Source: Paraphysomonas bandaiensis
Taxonomy: Eukaryota; Protista; Chrysophyceae
NCBI GenBank assembly: GCA_965644295.1
Contig: CBFFRP010000397.1
Coordinates: forward strand, 1-64,000
DNA length: 64,000 bases
Direction: 5' to 3'
The position numbers and the translations under genes are program-made. Below the pieces are notes generated by a model. It was not told the origin of the DNA. It did no database searches and worked only from the letters and a program-made list of their open reading frames with translations. Positions 30 to 60,749 of this stretch are shown here, one piece after another; positions within the stretch are counted from its first letter, which is position 1; each line of letters starts with the position of its first letter.

Positions 30-423
30 CACTTAATACTAATATCCTACTATTTGACGCTACGGAGGCTGCTTGTGCGTCGCCCCACCCAAGCACCAAG
101 GTGCGACCACCTCCGCTCTCTGTCCTTAAGGTGAACTAACCCGAATGCTTAACTTCAGCAGGCAGCCCAAACCCCAGATGCCCTTGAGGTAGGCCCATCC
201 ACGGATTCCTGTTTACTCGTCAAAGCCCAAAGACGTCTACACAGGGAACAATTATTTTAGTGTCCCTTGTACCACATAAGCGTTCAGCTATGAGTGGGCA
301 GAACAATATCTGCTGACTATATAATATGCGGCTCACGTTAGTTTCCCGGAGAAATATCTCCGGTACTTATCCCCCAAAACACCACGAAAGGGCGTCATGC
401 TGCGAATCCGACTTTGTTGAGGG
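30..423 (-). mobile_element. Short non-autonomous retroelement copy (5' HDV-like ribozyme module + LINE-derived 3' tail)
   Basis: Reverse complement matches 28500-28810 and 60385-60749. Starts CCCTCAAC at 423; the tail motif GACGCACAAGCAGC...AAATAGTAGG is at 46-100. Left boundary approximate. Confidence 0.8.
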
Positions 424-15696: not shown

Positions 15697-17487
15697 ATTA
15701 TCCTCTACTATTTAGCGCTACAGAAGCTGCTTGTGCGTCGCCGCAAGCACCAAGGTGCGACCACTTCCGTTCTTAATGTTGTTTGTGCGTTTCGCCCTGC
15801 TCGTGTGTCTTTGGACGCGTTGTCCGGGGGTCTCCCCTTGGGATGAGATTCCACCAGGCTCTGAGGTACGAGGTTCTGTATTAAGGTCCTGAGTGTACCG
15901 AGCACTAGATGTGTGTGCTGAGAGGTGGATGGTGTGGTGTAATGTGGCGTTGTCGCCATGCACCGTCTGGGCGTCAGGCATATGTGGAGTTGCCGGAGAC
16001 GGCGTCGCCGCTGTCTAGGGCCTGATGGTTTCATGCGGTCCGGTGCTATTTTCCTGTGTGTATGAGTGGTGGGGTTCGTGTGTGCAGTGGGCGGTGTTCC
16101 AGTCTCGGTTTTCGTCTGTGGATTCCTAGTAATCGTAGCACCCTTGGACGTTTCCATTTCTGTCTATGTTTTGGACGCCTTTGCGTTAGTAGCCTCGGGG
16201 GTCCTTTCTGTGGGGTGACGTATCGTCTACTTCGATCTTGGATCATGAGCTTTGCTGCAGCGAAGTAATCTGATGACCGCTGATTCGATGCTGCGCAGTC
16301 CTTGGGGTGTCAGTGACTCATGGATGTGATCTCCAAAACCGTCTCGAGTTGTGCAGTTGTGATGGTACCCGTCCAGAATCTCTCCACCTGCGGAACGGAG
16401 GGATTCCAGGCCCTGCTGGAGAGCCGCTGTAGTGCAGTGGTGGTTCATTGGGGTAGTACCGGATTTCTCAGTTCTTCGTGAAGCGCGTTTTTGTGACTGT
16501 GAAATGCAGACTCCCTTATCTGCGTTATGGCGTCATTTGTACAGTCTAGACACATGTGCTTGAGTGAGTCTAGTCAAAATCCGCAGTCAGAACATGCGGC
16601 TTTAGCCAGGTCGAGTCCGTGTTTGGTTTTAGCCCGGTTTCTTCCTATGCTGAAAGATTTGTCCCATGTCAATGCTGCATTGAGTACTCGCTGGCGCAGG
16701 TGGGAACTATCTTTATCCTTTGATGGACCACCATCTGCTTGTGCCAGTTTGCGCGGAAGTAGTGCCCCACTGTCTGTCCAATATCCAGGTGCCCGGTCGG
16801 GATTGTGACCGTAGCGTTGGTCTCTGAGGGCAGTGTATGCCTCCAGCGTCCGTTGACTGCGGAGGGATTGGAAGTCCGTGAGCAGGGCGCTCGCGCGATG
16901 CGGCCGTCGTTTCCCGGTTAGGCGCCAGTGCCATAAACCCTCGGTGAGTATTCGCTCAATTGTTTGGTCCACTTCTATGTTACAGACAGTGTAATTTTGT
17001 CGTCCCAGTAGTATATCTACCTCAAGCCAGTCCTCTCCTGCTACTGCGTCGGCAATGTAACTTTCTTTGTCTTCATATGTCCATTCAGATTCATCCGAGG
17101 TACGTCGTTCGGGGTGTGATCGTACCCATGCTACGTTCCTTTTGTACAATCGTTATTTGCTGCAATGCTTTCGAGCAGTACACCTTTGGCACGATGTCCC
17201 AGTGCCCGACGTCTGGTAGAAAGTGCTTCGTGTGTGCGTGTGCATACGGCCTTACAGTCCGTGTTTATCGGTATGTGTGCAGGGAGCCGCGCAGATAGCA
17301 GCCCCCATGAGTTCGTATGCATACGGGCCAAGTCCAGGGACGTCGCTGAAGGGTGTCTCTAATCGCAGTATTTTTGTGGTACCGGTCTTCCATTCATCCT
17401 CCGGGGGGAACCAGACGGCCGCCGCTCCTCCATGATGTATCCATCTTATGCGTGGGTGTACATGCGTGAAGCCGAGAAGGTTCATAT
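15697..17487 (-). mobile_element. LINE remnant of the RNase H-bearing family
   Basis: GGAAAV, YELMGAA, NTDCKAV, WVRSHPERR, YIADAVA, CSDCGF knuckle and PKGRPPD; homologous to 5535-7838; 3' UTR hairpin at 15728-15749. Confidence 0.88.
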
Positions 17488-26282: not shown

Positions 26283-27263
26283 GTATATATTGAATGTCTT
26301 ATTATTTAGCAATAGGCGTTGAAAACCTGCACTAATTAGTGACTAGAAGAATACTAGACATACTATTTAGACCTCTACCCGTCACTAATCAATAATTACA
26401 CAACCTCTTTTATCCTACTATTTAACGCTACAGAAGCTGCTTTTGTGCGTCGCCGCGAGCACCAAGGTGCAACCACTTCTGTTCTTTTAGTGTGTGTGTT
26501 ATAAGGCTCGCCATGCTCGTGTGTCCTGTGACTCACCGGCGCGTGTGATCTGGAGGTCTCCCCTTGGGATGAGACTCCACTGGGTTAGGAGGGGGCTCAG
26601 GGTTTTGTATTATTAAGTTCCAGAGTGTAGCGAGTTCTAGGTGGGTGGGCTGTGAGTTGGATAGAGCAGTGGGATGAGGCGTTGAATGTGTGGGCACTGA
26701 TGCTGTGCTCTTTTTGGACCTCTGGAGTAGATGGAGTTTCCGGAGACGGCGTCTTTGGGGGGGTCTGGACGGTGATAAAGTTATTTGGATTAGGTCGGTG
26801 GAATATGTGTGTGAGGCGGAAGGTGGCGCAGTCACGGGTCTTCTGTGGACCCCTATAGTAATTGTAGCACTCTCGGACGTTTACATGGCTGACTCCTCTT
26901 TTCTGACGCGGTCGCGGGGGTAACCTAGGAATTCCTTTGTGCAGAGTGATGTAACGGCGGCCGCGATCCTGTAACATTAGTAGCTTCGCTGCAGCATAAA
27001 GCGGTTAAAGTAGATCAATAACCGCTTTTTCTAGGTGTCGAAGACTTTTCTAGTTGTGTGTACACGTGGTCTCCAAAGACCGTTTCAAGTTGGGCTGTTG
27101 TGATGGTTCTCTCTACCTGCGGGATGGAGAGATTCCAGGCCCTACTGGAGAGTCTCTGTAGCGCATTTGTGACCCAGTGGGGTTGGGTCTGCTCTATTTG
27201 TATTTGTTGGAGAGCATTTTTGTGCCTTTGAAAGGCAGTCTCCCTTATCTGGGTGATGCACAA
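26283..27263 (-). mobile_element. 3' fragment of an RNase H-family LINE with complete 3' UTR
   Basis: Homologous to 15700-16525; PKGRPPD motif; the tail 26283-26480 aligns with 60264-60455. Confidence 0.85.
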
Positions 27264-27578
27264 AATAAGTAACTATGAACATTTAACAATATGTTGTAAA
27301 GATTATTATTTATAATATTTTTTATTACTTTCTTATACGTACTATTTCTCAGTTTTACAGCAATGATGTGATTATTGTTGTGTGTTGATGTGGTTACTAC
27401 TGTATTAACTGTGTATTATAATGGTAGTAGTCAAGAAGAGGTGCAACGGAAAGAAGAATTCGTGACGACTAATCCGGCGACGACCCAGAGAAAGAGGTAC
27501 CACTACGAAAGCGCAAGGGCAGGGTATGTAACACTGTTCATAAAGATGGTGGCGGGGTCGTCGAATTCCAGCAGAAAA

Positions 27579-28001
27579 TCCGGATGCTTGACTTCAGTAG
27601 GTTGCCCAATACCCCGCGGATGCCCTTGAGGTGGGCCCATCCACGGATGTCTGTTTATTCGTCAGGACCCAAAAAGACGTCTACTACTCAAGTTATATTT
27701 TAGTGTTCCTTGTACCATACAAGCATTCGGCTATGTATGGGCAGAACGATATAATTATATTTATGCTCCATAATAATGGGCTGACTATATATATTATGCA
27801 GCTTACATTAGTTTCCCGGAGAAATATCTCGCGGGACAAATTAACATTTTAGAAATACTCGTAGAATATAATATATATAATTTTATAGCTTTCTTTCAAG
27901 AGTCCCAAATTTGAAAATTTTCCCCACGGTTGTCTTATTATATAAGGTTGCTTTTAGAGAGAACAGCACGAAAAGGTGCGAGTTCGACTTTTTGTTGAGG
28001 G
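27579..28001 (-). mobile_element. Short ribozyme-headed element copy, interrupted by ~130 bp of unrelated DNA
   Basis: 27961-28001 is the 5' half of the module and 27579-27830 the remainder; 27831-27960 is unrelated. Confidence 0.75.
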
Positions 28002-28499
28002 TTTGAATCCCCCTTCTTGTAAAATGGAGCTTTGGTATAGATTCTTTCGTATTAATTATAATATTATTATACAAAATGTATAATATAATATATATATTAT
28101 AGTTATATACTTCTTCTACGCTCTTAAAAAAGTAGGGTCTAGCAAAATAAATTTTTGACCAGATTACCCCCATCATATGACCTGCAGGTTTGGTCTTTGC
28201 CATATATATAATATTATTATATATAGTAGACTTTACACTGTATGTCATACAGACAGTCTTTATACACTGTATTGCTGTTGTACGCAATCGAAAGCTGCAG
28301 TTCTAAGGTACTTCGGAGTATGTTGTAGTTAATACCAAAACTCTTCAGGTAATATTTTAAGGCAAAATAATTGATTGTTTTTAATACGGCCTATTTGTAC
28401 TGGGTTGCACCTCTAAACCGCTCAATCAACCATCAACCCAGCAACGATGTCGCTAATATATCTAATAGCTCTTTTTCGGAGATATTACATCGTAAGGAA

Positions 28500-28587
28500 C
28501 CCTCAACAAAGTCGGACTCGCACCTTTTCGTGGTGTTCTGGGGGATAAGTACCGGAGAGATTCTCTCTGGGAAACTAACGTGAGCCG
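28500..28587 (+). ncRNA. Candidate HDV-like (Pr77/ingi-type) self-cleaving ribozyme
   Basis: Hand fold: P1 CCCUCAAC / GUU(CU)GGGGG; P2 CGGACUCGC / GUGAGCCG; P3 ACC/GGU; L3 UUUUCGU; P4 CCGGAGA/UCUCUGG; J4/2 GAAA-C-UAA with putative catalytic C at 28575. Confidence 0.65.
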
Positions 28588-29705
28588 CAAACATAGTCAG
28601 CAGATATTGTTCTGCCCACTCATAGCCAAATGCTTGTGTGATACAAGGGACTCTATAAAGTGTCACTTGTGTAGACGTCTTTGGGCCCTGACGAATAAAC
28701 AGGCATCCGGGAATGGGCCCACCTCAAGGGCATCCGGGACAAGGCCCACCAGAAGGATAACCGGGGTATTGGGCTGCCTGCTGAAGTTAAGCATCCGGGA
28801 TGTTCACCTTAAGAACTCAAAACACCTGAAGTCAGCAGATGTCAGGTATATCAACATTCTGCTTGCTCCCTGCGTTTGCTTTGAGTGATTGATGCTGAGT
28901 ATGAGTTCACATTATTCGGTATCTGTGTGGCCAATGACCGAGGTAATGCGTCAAACTTTCCTCATGGATGCATGGCAATGGCAATGATGTGATTAGACCT
29001 GTCATGTCTTCTCACACGTCTACTGCCTAGTCTTGGTTTCTCCTGACCCAGGTCATTGAGATTATATCAAGGCTCTGGCACTGTTCTCCAAGCAGTGTCA
29101 GGTACATTTGTGGTGCTTTTATGTTATTCTTGCTTAGTAGGTTTTCATCCGAGCGGGGAAGGTGCACGGTTTCCTACTAGTGTAAGTCACTCGGGAGAAG
29201 AGTGCAAGGTGGATGCATGTGCTGGACGAGTGCACACAATGGAGGGAAGACATTGGAGTCAGCTTGAATTTGTAACAGATTTTGGTAGATGTCTGTTTCA
29301 TGCGTCAGTGTGCAAAATTGCACCAGTGAGACCGCTTCGTGACCGTGGGAGGACCCGGCGCTATAGAGCTACTTTATTCTCCCTTCCAGACTACCTGCTG
29401 CTGTGAACACCACCTTGAAGAGGGCCCTAAAGATCTGCCGCATATACAGGAGACATATGCCGAAGACACCGACCGCAAGTTGTTTGTGTTAGGACAAGTA
29501 GATTGGGCAGGAGCGTATGATCCGGCTTAAACACGCAACTCGTCGTATGCCCATGTAGCTAACTAAATCGTGTTGTATAGTTGAACACTTGTCGGTGCAT
29601 GCAATAGTAACTAGATGAGAGTCATGTTATGCCTAGTGTCGCGCGAGTTGTTAGGTTGGTCGCGGCAACGCACAAGCTTGCGCTTCTTAATAATCAGATT
29701 TTCAA
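28500..29705 (+). mobile_element. 1.2-kb ribozyme-headed non-autonomous retroelement with TSD
   Basis: 14-bp TSD TACATCGTAAGGAA at 28486-28499 and 29706-29719; starts CCCTCAAC; ends GCGGCAACGCACAAGC...TAATAATCAGATTTTCAA. Confidence 0.88.
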
Positions 29706-30912
29706 TACATCGTAAGGAAGAAGCATGTCCTTCTCTCGAAAGCTTCTTGGTGCATTTGATTACTTCGAACCGATAAAATTTTGGATGCAGTTTCCAGTCC
29801 GAACTATCATGCATGTTATTATCCAAAATAAACAATTTTGTAGGATCATGGCTTATAAACAAAGAACTGATCAGAGTGTATACTCAACAGTCAAACATTT
29901 ACTATTGTGTTGTCTCTCTACTTGCAATCTATTTTATCAGATTTTAGATATAGTCATGATCGTATTTCAGTTTTACTATAATAGAATTCATAATATCATA
30001 TATATATTATTAGTTCATGAAATAAATGTAATACTGTTACCCACTACTGTGTATATTCTTTAAGCAACAGCCAGAACTCAAACCTTAGATATATTAGCGA
30101 TATCGTTGCTAGGTTGATGGTTGATTGAGCGGTATTCTCTGGTCTTAAAATATTACCAGAAGAGTTGGTATTAACTACAACATACTTCGAAGTGCGTACT
30201 TGCTTGTAAGCTTTTTGCTAGTAGTTATCCTGGATTCTGTGTAGCAATGAAATGTAGAATCTACAAAAATACAACAGCAGGAATAGGCATTAAATATTAT
30301 GCACATATAACGCTGTTAAAGCTAAATAATATAACTTGTAAGAAAAATATTTTAGTTTGTGATCGATGTGTTGCTACAAATAACCTACAACACAACCTTC
30401 TTACTATCTCTCCGAATATGTATAATTCAGCAATACATAGTGCCTTCAAAAGCCCAAATTAATAATAGTTGGTATGTGGAGCGATACACCGTCTCAGCTG
30501 TACAACCCCAAAAATGGCGGAGTTGGAGGATCCCCACGGATGTGTGTAAACAAATGACAGCACAACACCACAAAATGATAAAGTTGGCCCTTTAACTTTT
30601 TCTTACTCAAACTGCAAATGTATCTAACCACCATACTATTAATAGCTTTTGCTGGACTTGTCTTTTCAAAGTCTATAACATTTGGCGGTGTTGGCCACCT
30701 ATCTATAACATGGTATTCCAATACCTGTTGTGATACCTATCAGGTAAGTATAGACTAAACGTACCACTACAAAACTCCTTTAGCTGCAACGCATTCCATA
30801 CTACTTCACTAAGTATATACACATGTATGTTCATTACAAGAATATTCAGTGAATTCTAAAACCGGGGCAAATCCAACACTAATACGCGGAAAAGTCAAAA
30901 ACTTACATACGA

Positions 30913-42725: not shown

Positions 42726-42998
42726 CCCTCAACAAAGTCGGACTCGTACCTTTTCATGGTGCTCTGGGGGATAAGTATCAGAGATATTTCTCCGGGAAAC
42801 TAACGTGAGCCGCAAACATAGTCAGCATATATTGTTCTGCCCACTCATAGCCAAACGCTTGTGTGGTACATGGGACACTATAATAAGTATCACTTGTGCA
42901 GACGTCTTCGGGCCTTGACGAATGAACAGGTATCCGGGAATGGGCCCACCTCAAGGGCATCCGGGACAGGGTACACCTCAAGGGTAACAGGGGTATTC
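42726..42998 (+). mobile_element. Ribozyme-headed element copy, 3'-truncated
   Basis: Aligns to 28500-28770 from the first CCC. Confidence 0.85.
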
Positions 42999-51454: not shown

Positions 51455-51630
51455 TTTTAGCAATAGGCGTGTCAGAGTCAGAACTAATGTAGCATTGCAA
51501 TTTAACTAAGTAGTGCTGAGCTCTGATATCCTACTACTATTTCACGCTTCGAAAGCTGCTTGTGCGACACAGCAAGCACGAAGATGCAACCGCTTTCGCT
51601 CTATCACTCAAAGCAATCGTAGTGAGCAAA
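51455..51630 (-). repeat. Isolated LINE/short-element 3' tail fragment
   Basis: GCAATAGGCGTG...CCTACTA..TTTCACGC...GCTGCTTGTGCG matches 59505-59680 and 59920-60080. Confidence 0.7.
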
Positions 51631-53695: not shown

Positions 53696-54351
53696 TGTCG
53701 TTAGATAATGTGCATATCGTGAACCCGTACGTCTTATCCAATAATTAACAACTATAAATATGAATATAAGAACCAATCAATAAATAAAACTATAGAACAG
53801 ATGTGAATGGCTCAGCTGAATGTGTCTTAGCGTGGATGATTACATCTGATACTTAAATAATAAGAATGGTTCGGTGATTCTTCTACCTTCCACTCTATAG
53901 AGACGAGAATATGTATATGTATACATTCTGTTACGTATATACCTGTACAACCAGTGTATAGGTATACGGCGGTATATTATGGTATATACTGAGTAGCAGT
54001 ATACTCCACACCACATATACTGCTCTGTATAGGTATATATACCAGGTATATGCAGATTAAGATATCATAACCACAGTGGATCAACTCGGAGCATGATCAA
54101 CACATATACATATGGATATCCACGTTATATATACCAGTTATAGTAACCATCTTTTGACTTCACTCTAAGTTGAAGTTACTTTCACTTCGTTTAGTCTTCT
54201 TTTTAACTGCAATAAAATGCGTATAAACAAAAAAATAATATTCCAATAAGCGAATCAATTGAGAAGAATCACACCATATGAATCTCATCACTTATATCTC
54301 CTTTATAATCTTATAGGGCACTACAGTACATCACATCGTCTTAATTGAGGG

Positions 54352-59504: not shown

Positions 59505-59886
59505 GTCGTGTACGAGTCAGGACTAGTTTGGCATCGTCATTTAACTAACTAGTGCTTAACTTTGATATCTGAAATCCTACTATTTTACGCTATGAAAGAT
59601 GAAAGCTGCTTATGCGTCACTGCAAGCATCAAGGTGCAACCACTTTCGCTCAATCGCTCAAAGCAAACGCAGTGAGCAACAGGCAGAATGTTGATACACC
59701 TGACATCTGCTGACTTCAGGATTTTTGAGTCCTTAATGTGAACAGCCCGGATACTTGACTTTAGCAGGTGGGCAGAAAATTATCTACTGACTATATATGC
59801 GGCTCACGTTAGTTTCCCGGAGAAATATCTGCGGTACTTATCTCCCAGAAAACCACGAAAAGGTGTGAGTCCGACTTTGTCGAGGG
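59505..59886 (-). mobile_element. Internally deleted ribozyme-headed element with LINE tail
   Basis: Starts CCCTCGAC at 59886; tail hairpin ~59606-59628; flanked by direct repeat GTCCAATTCTA (59494-59504, 59888-59898). Confidence 0.78.
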
Positions 59887-60263: not shown

Positions 60264-60749
60264 ATATATTGAAAGTCTTGTTATAAGCAATAGGCGTTAA
60301 AAACCTGCACCAACGTAGTAGCTAGATGAATGCTAGACAAACTAGTTAGACCTCTACCTGTAACTAATCAGTACACACTTTTTCAATCCTGCTATTTAAC
60401 GCTACGGAAGCTGCTTGTGCGTCGCCGCAAGAACCAAGGTGCGACAACTTCCGCTCTGAGTTCTTAAGGTGAACATCCCGGATGCTTGACTTCAGCAGGC
60501 AGCCCAATACTCCGGTTACCCTTGAGGTGGGCCCATCCCCAGATGTCTGTTTATTCGTCAGGGCCCAAAGACGTCTACACAAGTGACACTTATTGGTGTA
60601 CCTTGTCCCACACAAGCATTCGGCTATGAGTGGGCAGAAGAATAGCTGCTGCTTATGTTTGCGGCTCACGTTAGTTTCCCAGAGAGGATCTCTCCGGTAC
60701 TTATCCCCCAGAACACCACAAAAAGGTGCGAGTCCGACTTTGTTGAGGG
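60264..60749 (-). mobile_element. Apparently complete ~490-bp RIME/NARTc-like element: ribozyme module joined to LINE 3' UTR
   Basis: 60460-60749 matches 28500-28818; 60264-60455 matches the 3' UTR of LINE 26283-26480. No clear TSD. Confidence 0.85.

Follow-up and report, generated by a model that had tools for sequence, protein, structure and literature searches.

In the trypanosomatids, the first 77 bases of the L1Tc element, the Pr77 signature, form an internal RNA polymerase II promoter whose essential parts are a CGTG at +25 to +28 (the downstream promoter element, DPE) and the first bases CCCT (PMC4748587), and ribozymes of the hepatitis delta virus (HDV)-like type with one and the same layout, namely L1TcRz, L1Tco(78)Rz, NARTco(78)Rz and TvSIDER1(94)Rz, cleave efficiently in vitro (PMC3185411; PMC4035085). 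The L1Tc sequence begins CCCTGGCTCAGCCGG (PMC4748587) and continues, as read off primers, ...TGGTGCCAGGG-TCTAGTA-CTCTTTGCTAGAG-AGGAAGCTAAG-CGCCTGCTG (PMC3185411); those of L1Tco and TvSIDER1 are found in the supplement of PMC4035085. Here we consider positions 28500-28587 of a 64,000-nucleotide stretch of Paraphysomonas bandaiensis DNA (positions 1 to 64,000 of contig CBFFRP010000397.1, assembly GCA_965644295.1; hereafter the window), for which an original prediction, made from the letters of the DNA, had proposed a repeated HDV-like ribozyme resembling Pr77 and heading a family of mobile elements. The Pr77 layout given in that prediction agrees with the sequences that PMC3185411, PMC4748587 and, in its supplement, PMC4035085 print. 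We propose, with a probability of roughly 60%, that this segment of 88 nt is the head of a family of non-coding retroposons that lack long terminal repeats (non-LTR retroposons) and resemble short interspersed nuclear elements (SINEs), and that it is a predicted HDV-like ribozyme which would free the 5′ end of their transcript.

The module, which starts with CCCTCAAC, was found at all six places of the window where it had been announced. Five of them (28500+, 42726+, 423-, 59886- and 60749-) match a 25-base probe with two mismatches at most, against none in 100 shuffled sequences, and the sixth, 28001-, is a degenerate copy split by two insertions. When the six copies were aligned together with 40 bases of flank, the sequences were unrelated before CCCTC(A/G)AC and homologous from there on, and the same abrupt start, another claim of the original prediction, recurred in all of 30 further loci of the genome. 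The assembly amounts to 62.5 Mb and is described as gene-dense; in it, the first 23 bases, with up to two mismatches, gave 1,328 matches (0 for a reversed control pattern) and the first 111 bases 1,973 first-look candidates, at least 28 copies were 100% identical over 109-111 bases, and an exact 32-nt stretch from P3 to J1/4 occurred in 293 copies. By these counts the 5′ module (1,973 candidates) is about ten times commoner than the tail proper to the longer of the two size classes described below (179 candidates).

The copy at 28500 heads an element of 1,206-1,207 bp (28500-29705/6, plus strand), bordered on both sides by the same 14-bp target-site duplication TACATCGTAAGGAA, upstream at 28486-28499 and downstream at 29706-29719. 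Its body (28588-29705) is non-coding and ends in TAATAATCAGATTTTCAA(T), with no poly-A; among the open reading frames (ORFs) of the window, none of at least 120 aa lies on the element strand, and neither size class has a long ORF. In 26 of the 30 fetched loci a direct repeat of 10-18 bp ends right before CCCTCAAC, and its downstream partner lies at about 1,205-1,241 bp or about 466-513 bp, which yields two size classes of about 1,207 and about 500 bp. Bases 1-325 are common to both, with 93% identity, and the two classes terminate in closely related motifs, TAATAATCAGATTTTCAAT and TAATAATAAGACTTTCAAT, followed by a few A/T. Both are SINE-like non-LTR retroposons, with target-site duplications of 10-16 bp, produced by target-primed reverse transcription; and since the duplications abut base 1 and homology starts there, the template RNA truly began at base 1.

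The other copies of the window are in different states of preservation. The ~500-bp-class copy at 60264-60749 (minus strand) has a module that departs from the reference by two bases and reaches an equal descriptor score (see below); 42726-42997 (plus) is an older copy that covers only the first ~272 bp and whose module bears several substitutions; 59650-59886 (minus) is internally deleted; 57-423 (minus) is an old member of the ~500-bp class with an insertion of 8 nt before P3; and in the degenerate copy at 27574-28001 (minus) it is the module that the two insertions break. Three isolated fragments resembling SINE or long interspersed nuclear element (LINE) 3′ tails (26285-26485, 15716-15773 and 51543-51602, all on the minus strand) are probably 5′-truncated insertions. 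Elsewhere in the genome, an older copy has its ribozyme head interrupted behind base 40 by a full 1.2-kb element, whose insertion duplicated TTCGTGGTGATCTGG (L002, G000:C485:40681-43791), and a head-to-tail array of three 1.2-kb elements, spaced by 1.4-1.8 kb, has every member within the same short tandem repeat rich in ACTATA/TAGAC (L003-L005, G000:C421:68592-74870), an array that looks like a segmental amplification and not like three independent insertions.

As RNA, the head can adopt, according to the fold drawn by hand and to the descriptor introduced below, the nested double pseudoknot of the HDV-like self-cleaving ribozymes, with 100% standard pairs. All positions are on the plus strand. 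The 5′ strand of P1, CCCUCAAC (28500-28507, bases 1-8), would pair with a 3′ strand of 10 nt, GUUCUGGGGG (28535-28544, bases 36-45), in which either C28538 and U28539 are bulged or 28535-28538 are unpaired; after J1/2 (bases 9-13 from 28500), the 5′ strand of P2, CGGACUCGC (28513-28521, bases 14-22, A17 bulged), would form 8 bp, one of them G-U, with GUGAGCCG (28580-28587, bases 81-88); and P3 (28522-28534; ACC/GGU, bases 23-25/33-35) would enclose the 7-nt L3 UUUUCGU (bases 26-32), this segment containing the CGTG at +30 to +33. J1/4, AUAAGUA (28545-28551, bases 46-52), would contribute A28545 to a single-pair P1.1 with U28527 of L3; it is followed by the P4 hairpin of 8 bp with the loop AUU (28552-28570, bases 53-71), which the centroid fold also contains with standard pairs, and by J4/2, GAAACUAAC (28571-28579, bases 72-80; Pr77 counterpart GAAGCUAAG), where the candidate catalytic base C28575 (C76) stands, to judge from its position in the sequence, at the place homologous to the catalytic-C site. 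C1 pairs with the G directly before J1/4, HDV-like ribozymes cut 5′ of the base so paired (rule as quoted in PMC3774820), and the predicted cleavage is located 5′ of 28500. The candidate also has the L3 ending in CGU and the 3-bp P3 that serve as a criterion for HDV-like folds.

The fold was evaluated with a loose HDV descriptor, in which the start was fixed at base 1, P1 had 6-8 bp and could contain a single bulge no longer than 2 nt, P3 had 3 bp, L3 6-9 nt, P4 at least 4 bp and P2 at least 5 bp with one bulge at most, and a C was demanded in J4/2. It returned the hand-drawn fold exactly, in the helix order P1-P2-P3-(L3)-P3′-P1′-P4-P2′, with a score of 25.5. Among 300 composition-preserving shuffles, 284 were without any HDV fold, the best scored 21.5 and 0 reached 25.5. 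When both strands of the window were scanned, 10 of 127,810 starts attained 25.5, two of which are the intact copies 28500+ and 60749-; the remaining high-scoring starts mostly cluster at few places or are repetitive. The segments 53896-54057, 39183 and 4387 equal the score of the candidate; they are not repeated as element heads and were taken as false positives.

The strongest comparative support for the fold comes from unrelated environmental sequences. Patterns that required only parts of L3/P3, J1/4 and J4/2 (the 3′ half of L3 with GGU in L073 and L074, and the J4/2 form GAAACUAA in L073-L076) and demanded no pairing in P1 or P2 gave two matches in metagenome contigs, L073 and L074, two in viral contigs, L075 and L076, and none in a scan of bacterial and archaeal genomes. 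The core ACC-UUUUCGU-GGU, AUAAGUA, GAAACUAA thus recurs in four unrelated environmental sequences whose helices differ, and the 5′ half of the P3-L3 segment recurs in them beyond what the patterns demanded. L073 (74 nt, minus strand) has L3, J1/4 and J4/2 identical to those of the candidate, a P1 of 7 bp, GGAAUCC/GGAUUCU, with G1-U37 at its base, and a P2 of 9 bp; L074, whose 5′ end is cut, has the same core, a P1 3′ strand of 7 nt and a CCCC/GGGG P4; and L075 and L076 have ACC-UUCUCGU-GGU, GUAAGUA and GAAACUAA, with a P1 of 7 and 6 bp starting from G and a P2 of 7 bp. The three complete ones, L073, L075 and L076, yield canonical folds with a P1 of 6-7 bp and a P2 of 7-9 bp, complementary though unrelated in sequence; pairs were tallied by script, as MAFFT had misaligned the unrelated helices. 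The predicted P1.1 pair, between the third nucleotide of L3 and the first of J1/4, is U-A in the candidate, L073 and L074; L075 and L076 have C-G at this place, L1Tco and TvSIDER1 have A-U, and it is this covariation across lineages that, at the level of sequence, argues most strongly for the fold. One core (ACC-UUYUCGU-GGU, RUAAGUA, GAAACUAA) would in this way link HDV-like folds of a retroposon, of phages and of a mitochondrial context that current Rfam models do not detect.

The surroundings of these homologues are diverse. In L073, an AT-rich metagenome contig, 24 nt separate the fold (281-354, minus strand) from the end of a 94-aa ORF upstream of it, and further features upstream on the same strand are an ORF for a GIY-YIG/NUMOD homing endonuclease and part of a COX1 exon, a context that looks like a mitochondrial cox1 intron; we know of no described HDV-like ribozyme in such a context. 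Around the fold of L076 (9142-9226, plus strand) there is an array of 11 tRNA genes, which resembles the setting of theta ribozymes, and the fold of L075 (4942-5017, minus strand) follows a terminator-like hairpin on a viral contig of 118 kb, with no tRNA nearby.

Several observations weigh against a functional ribozyme, and most of them concern P1, whose non-canonical form the original prediction had itself pointed out. The 3′ strand of P1 has 10 nt, compared with 6-7 nt directly after P3 in L073, L075, L076 and Pr77; it allows three registers, one of eight pairs around a bulged CU, one of six pairs (C1-A6 with U40-G45) at four bases from P3, and one of 7 bp with a one-base bulge and a shifted P3; and a strict descriptor, with a continuous P1 of 6-8 bp right after P3 and bulges barred, yields no fold. 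The genome holds no subfamily with a P1 3′ strand of canonical length, the 26 shorter strands being scattered single-copy deletions, mostly inside the G run, and changes at position 5 of P1 are rare (13 copies) and uncompensated, with no compensatory change anywhere in P1. [quoted passage not shown] The unusual P1 may mean that activity is lowered or lost in some or all copies. Furthermore, the nested minimum free energy of the candidate is no better than that of shuffles (z = -0.23) and includes a competing helix, pseudoknots not being modelled: the nested parts of the fold amount to -18.9 to -22.6 kcal/mol, against -25.1 for the competing nested minimum. In favour of the fold, however, the ViennaRNA centroid of bases 1-91 contains P1, P3 and P4 and leaves both strands of P2 unpaired. 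The tolerances of the loose descriptor were chosen after the candidate had been seen. In trypanosomatids, TbSIDER1-beta and TcoSIDER1-beta are adequately folded and yet inactive in vitro (PMC4035085), so that a fold alone is no proof of activity. Finally, no HDV-type family of Rfam matches the candidate, be it at the gathering score or at E values up to 10; this silence carries little weight, because Rfam likewise misses the canonical L073, as well as the 5′-cut L074.

Copy-to-copy variation within the genome amounts to random decay with almost no covariation, so that the covariation across genomic copies envisaged in the original prediction largely failed to appear, just as the match of the Infernal type to HDV models did, the latter by a search of low power. 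The individual variants quoted there are real. Structural variation at the level of subfamilies is confined to P4, of which two forms have been propagated, with 168 and 107 exact copies in the genome; three positions distinguish them, and each keeps a perfect hairpin, a point in favour of the fold, the second being CCGGAGA-UAUU-UCUCCGG; and in the copy at 59886 P2 CUCGC becomes CUCAC, a one-sided change of G-U to A-U, accompanied by one mismatch in P1.

The retroposons seem to share their machinery with a LINE that does not carry the head. Over its final ~185 bp the ~500-bp class shows ~74% identity with the 3′ end of a LINE of 7,275 bp (G000:C352:172969-180243), of which a second copy lies on the contig of the window, outside the latter, and whose 5′ segment has about 40 genomic copies; the 1,207-bp class shares with it only the terminal motif. 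This LINE contains a single ORF of 2,348 aa with SET, AP-endonuclease (APE) and reverse-transcriptase (RT) domains, without a match to RNase H, and in both of its two copies, which have different flanks, it begins with TATCCTGTTTTC... (TATCCTG...) and not with the module. In a second family of SET-APE-RT LINEs (C426) the terminal motif is similar, and the 20 kb examined there are free of the module; no module-like match was found in the other LINE regions scanned, where the descriptor gave only repetitive, low-complexity false positives; and the module is absent from metagenome contigs that encode related reverse transcriptases, at 43-49% identity. As far as these comparisons reach, the head would be specific to non-coding elements: the claim that it heads a mobile element family stands for the two SINE-like classes and does not extend to the LINE that shares their tail. 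In the two LINE families (L047:5970 to L048:3243; L043/L044), a PR/SET-like domain lies just upstream of the AP endonuclease and the reverse transcriptase, in single ORFs of 2,348 or 2,479 aa, and the closest database relatives are unnamed metagenome fragments. A further ORF, of 2,795 aa, is located between identical AU-rich palindromic repeats 9,486 bp apart (L049/L050, G000:C143:18000-37999); the 3′ end of the element that bears it is 80% identical to the LINE tail over 369 bp, and it is either a LINE-like element between long direct repeats or an element of a different type.

With regard to transcription, sampled words of 28200-29900 are present in marine poly-A and cDNA metatranscriptome runs and in runs of three coded organisms. 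The contigs of three RNA runs cover the element and not its unique flanks, and three RNA contigs extend upstream of 28500 into other flanks, which may represent read-through transcripts or DNA carry-over; contigs that cross the 5′ junction fit co-transcription. Being assembled contigs, which are blind to 5′ ends, these data speak neither for nor against cleavage. The proteins of the window are ordinary eukaryotic ones (anoctamin, C2, RING, sulfatase, GT10 fucosyltransferase), and the core of the kinetoplastid spliced leader (primer in PMC4748587) gave 35 matches in the genome versus 31 for a control, none of them exact, that is, the level of chance. The host is a marine eukaryote without a kinetoplastid spliced-leader signal, in keeping with the initial view of a protist apparently unrelated to the trypanosomatids.

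Alternative explanations for the conserved head are that it acts mainly or only in the DNA, as an internal promoter that fixes the start at base 1, in which case the fold would be that of an inherited and inactive ribozyme. We regard this as possible, on balance unlikely. Both determinants of Pr77 are present (CCCT at +1 to +4 and CGTG at +30 to +33), every master variant has a non-canonical P1, the well-folded signatures of TbSIDER1 and TcoSIDER1 are inactive in vitro (PMC4035085), and a focused promoter equally predicts a uniform 5′ end. However, CGTG falls within the L3/P3 core of all the HDV-like homologues, those of phage and mitochondrial context too, so that the RNA fold alone explains its presence; the complementarity of P2 and P4 and the P1.1 pair, useless to a DNA promoter, would be left unexplained; and the factors of Pr77 have been studied in trypanosomatids only, in contrast to a genome that lacks the kinetoplastid spliced-leader signal. 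A dual role, as promoter and ribozyme, is possible.

It could also be supposed that the ribozyme now serves the host, cutting the mRNAs that have a copy in their untranslated regions, as proposed for SIDER2 of Leishmania. The SIDER precedent (PMC4035085), some 1,300 or more copies dispersed in a gene-dense genome, and the RNA contigs that run across the 5′ junction would all agree with such a use; nonetheless, a large number of copies, with 99% or full identity, still possess intact duplications, which speaks of recent transposition and not of old, domesticated insertions, and we consider this reading highly improbable. Least probable of all, in our opinion, is that the head is a mere conserved 5′ segment, for example a protein-binding or packaging signal, with a coincidental likeness to HDV. 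Conservation between the size classes does continue through bases 89-325, Rfam gives no match, and the resemblance of the unpaired core to Pr77 (23 of 30 positions, with flexible gaps) is not significant window-wide, being equalled by two unrelated positions of the window and by shuffled sequences of 128 kb, whose mean maximum is 22.2. Against this, the full fold anchored at base 1 occurs in ~6 per 100,000 natural positions and 0 of 300 shuffles, and chance is an improbable source both of the same core within textbook HDV folds of other sequences and of a P1.1 formed by three different Watson-Crick pairs.

If, as we prefer, the head is a self-cleaving ribozyme, transcription of the copies would be driven by host promoters upstream of them, or by a promoter within the head as in Pr77, and the head would cut the transcript directly 5′ of C28500, using C28575 in J4/2. 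The cut would give a uniform RNA 5′ end, and the ribozyme, retained in the RNA, would be inherited by every new copy, the 3′ tail recruiting the reverse transcriptase of the LINE. An active head would suppose several hundred intact and more than 1,000 total self-cleaving RNA copies in a compact marine genome; it would make the 5′-terminal HDV-like ribozymes known from one more lineage, and from a SINE paired with a LINE that is without a ribozyme; it would offer a natural test of how much irregularity is tolerated in P1; and insertions in transcribed regions would possibly cut host mRNAs (compare the SIDERs of Leishmania). A broader proposal, which we find distinctly doubtful, is that the promoter/ribozyme head of the Pr77 type was not an invention of the trypanosomatids, and would be instead an old or horizontally spread module that unrelated LINE/SINE systems could capture, here as the sole head of a SINE in place of a polymerase III promoter, working despite a bulged and lengthened P1 and amounting to more than 1,000 self-cleaving sites across the transcriptome.

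Turning to the comparison with the known systems, Pr77 and the candidate both occupy the first bases of a retroposon (1 to ~80, and 1-88 in the candidate), non-coding elements included, and both the trypanosomatid ribozymes and the candidate start with CCCU/CUCU and close P1 by a pair between C1 and the G adjacent to J1/4. L1Tco has ACC-UCAACGU-GGU where the candidate has ACC-UUUUCGU-GGU (the flanks being ACC/GGU or GCC/GGC in Pr77), UCCAGUA and not AUAAGUA in J1/4, both ending in AGUA, and GAAGCUAAG against GAAACUAAC in J4/2, with the shared form GAA-N-CUAA-N; in both, the P4 hairpin stands between J1/4 and J4/2 and the 3′ strand of P2 comes next, the sequences of P2 and P4 being unrelated and still paired; and L1TcRz is also drawn with a single-pair P1.1 (PMC3185411), like the candidate. 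The differences are that P1 has 7 continuous bp in Pr77 and 8 bp with a 2-nt bulge, or a displaced 6 bp, in the candidate (3′ strand GCCAGGG in L1Tco, GUU(CU)GGGGG here), that CGTG is at +25 to +28 in the former and at +30 to +33 in the latter, that 7 of 30 core positions differ, and that Pr77 sits on APE-RT-RNase H LINEs of the ingi/L1Tc clade and their derivatives, L1Tc itself carrying it, whereas here the tail-sharing LINE is of the SET-APE-RT type and without the head. The match of the core blocks was dropped as evidence of descent for the reason given above, namely that unrelated positions and shuffles equal it; its rate per position, 2e-6, is meaningful only since a retroposon 5′ end had been specified in advance as the place to look. 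As the same core appears in phage and mitochondrial HDV-like folds, the likeness would be mostly generic and no proof of descent from Pr77: judged by sequence, the resemblance appears genuine but consists largely of the generic core of this HDV-like branch, and a specific descent is weakly supported. Of the analogous self-cleaving 5′ module first proposed, then, the fold, the position and the HDV-like kinship are supported in silico, self-cleavage being a prediction.

By its sequence, the core appears to be of the type present in the L1Tc/Pr77 ribozymes, in the R2 junction and in the phage contigs. R2 and other non-LTR retroposons (R4, Dong, baggins; PMC3774820) have 5′-terminal self-cleaving ribozymes that free the element RNA from a co-transcript, with the same helix order as the candidate, and the stretch CC-UUCUCGU of the phage contigs L075 and L076 is also present in a printed R2 junction sequence (PMC3774820); but R2 often takes P1 from the upstream 28S and cuts upstream of the element, where the P1 of the candidate is wholly internal, and R2 is site-specific and autonomous, where the candidate element is dispersed and SINE-like. 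With regard to the minimal HDV-like (theta) ribozymes of phages (PMC10879173), the comparison was made through L075 and L076: these two share with the candidate the core, J1/4 (as GUAAGUA) and GAAACUAA, and, unlike it, they belong to prokaryotic viruses with no retroposon, start with G and have a canonical P1 of 6-7 bp. Hammerhead retrozymes and the twister variants of Schistosoma non-LTR elements are, according to PMC7229834 and PMC8501958, non-coding mobile elements with a small self-cleaving ribozyme of their own that processes their RNA, though of other classes, the retrozymes passing through a circular RNA intermediate. To the 5′-terminal HDV-like ribozymes already known from non-LTR retroposons, the candidate would add another, predicted one, and the traits that set it apart are a longer and bulged P1, its presence in SINE-like elements only, with a LINE partner that has no such head, and a very high copy number in a marine protist.

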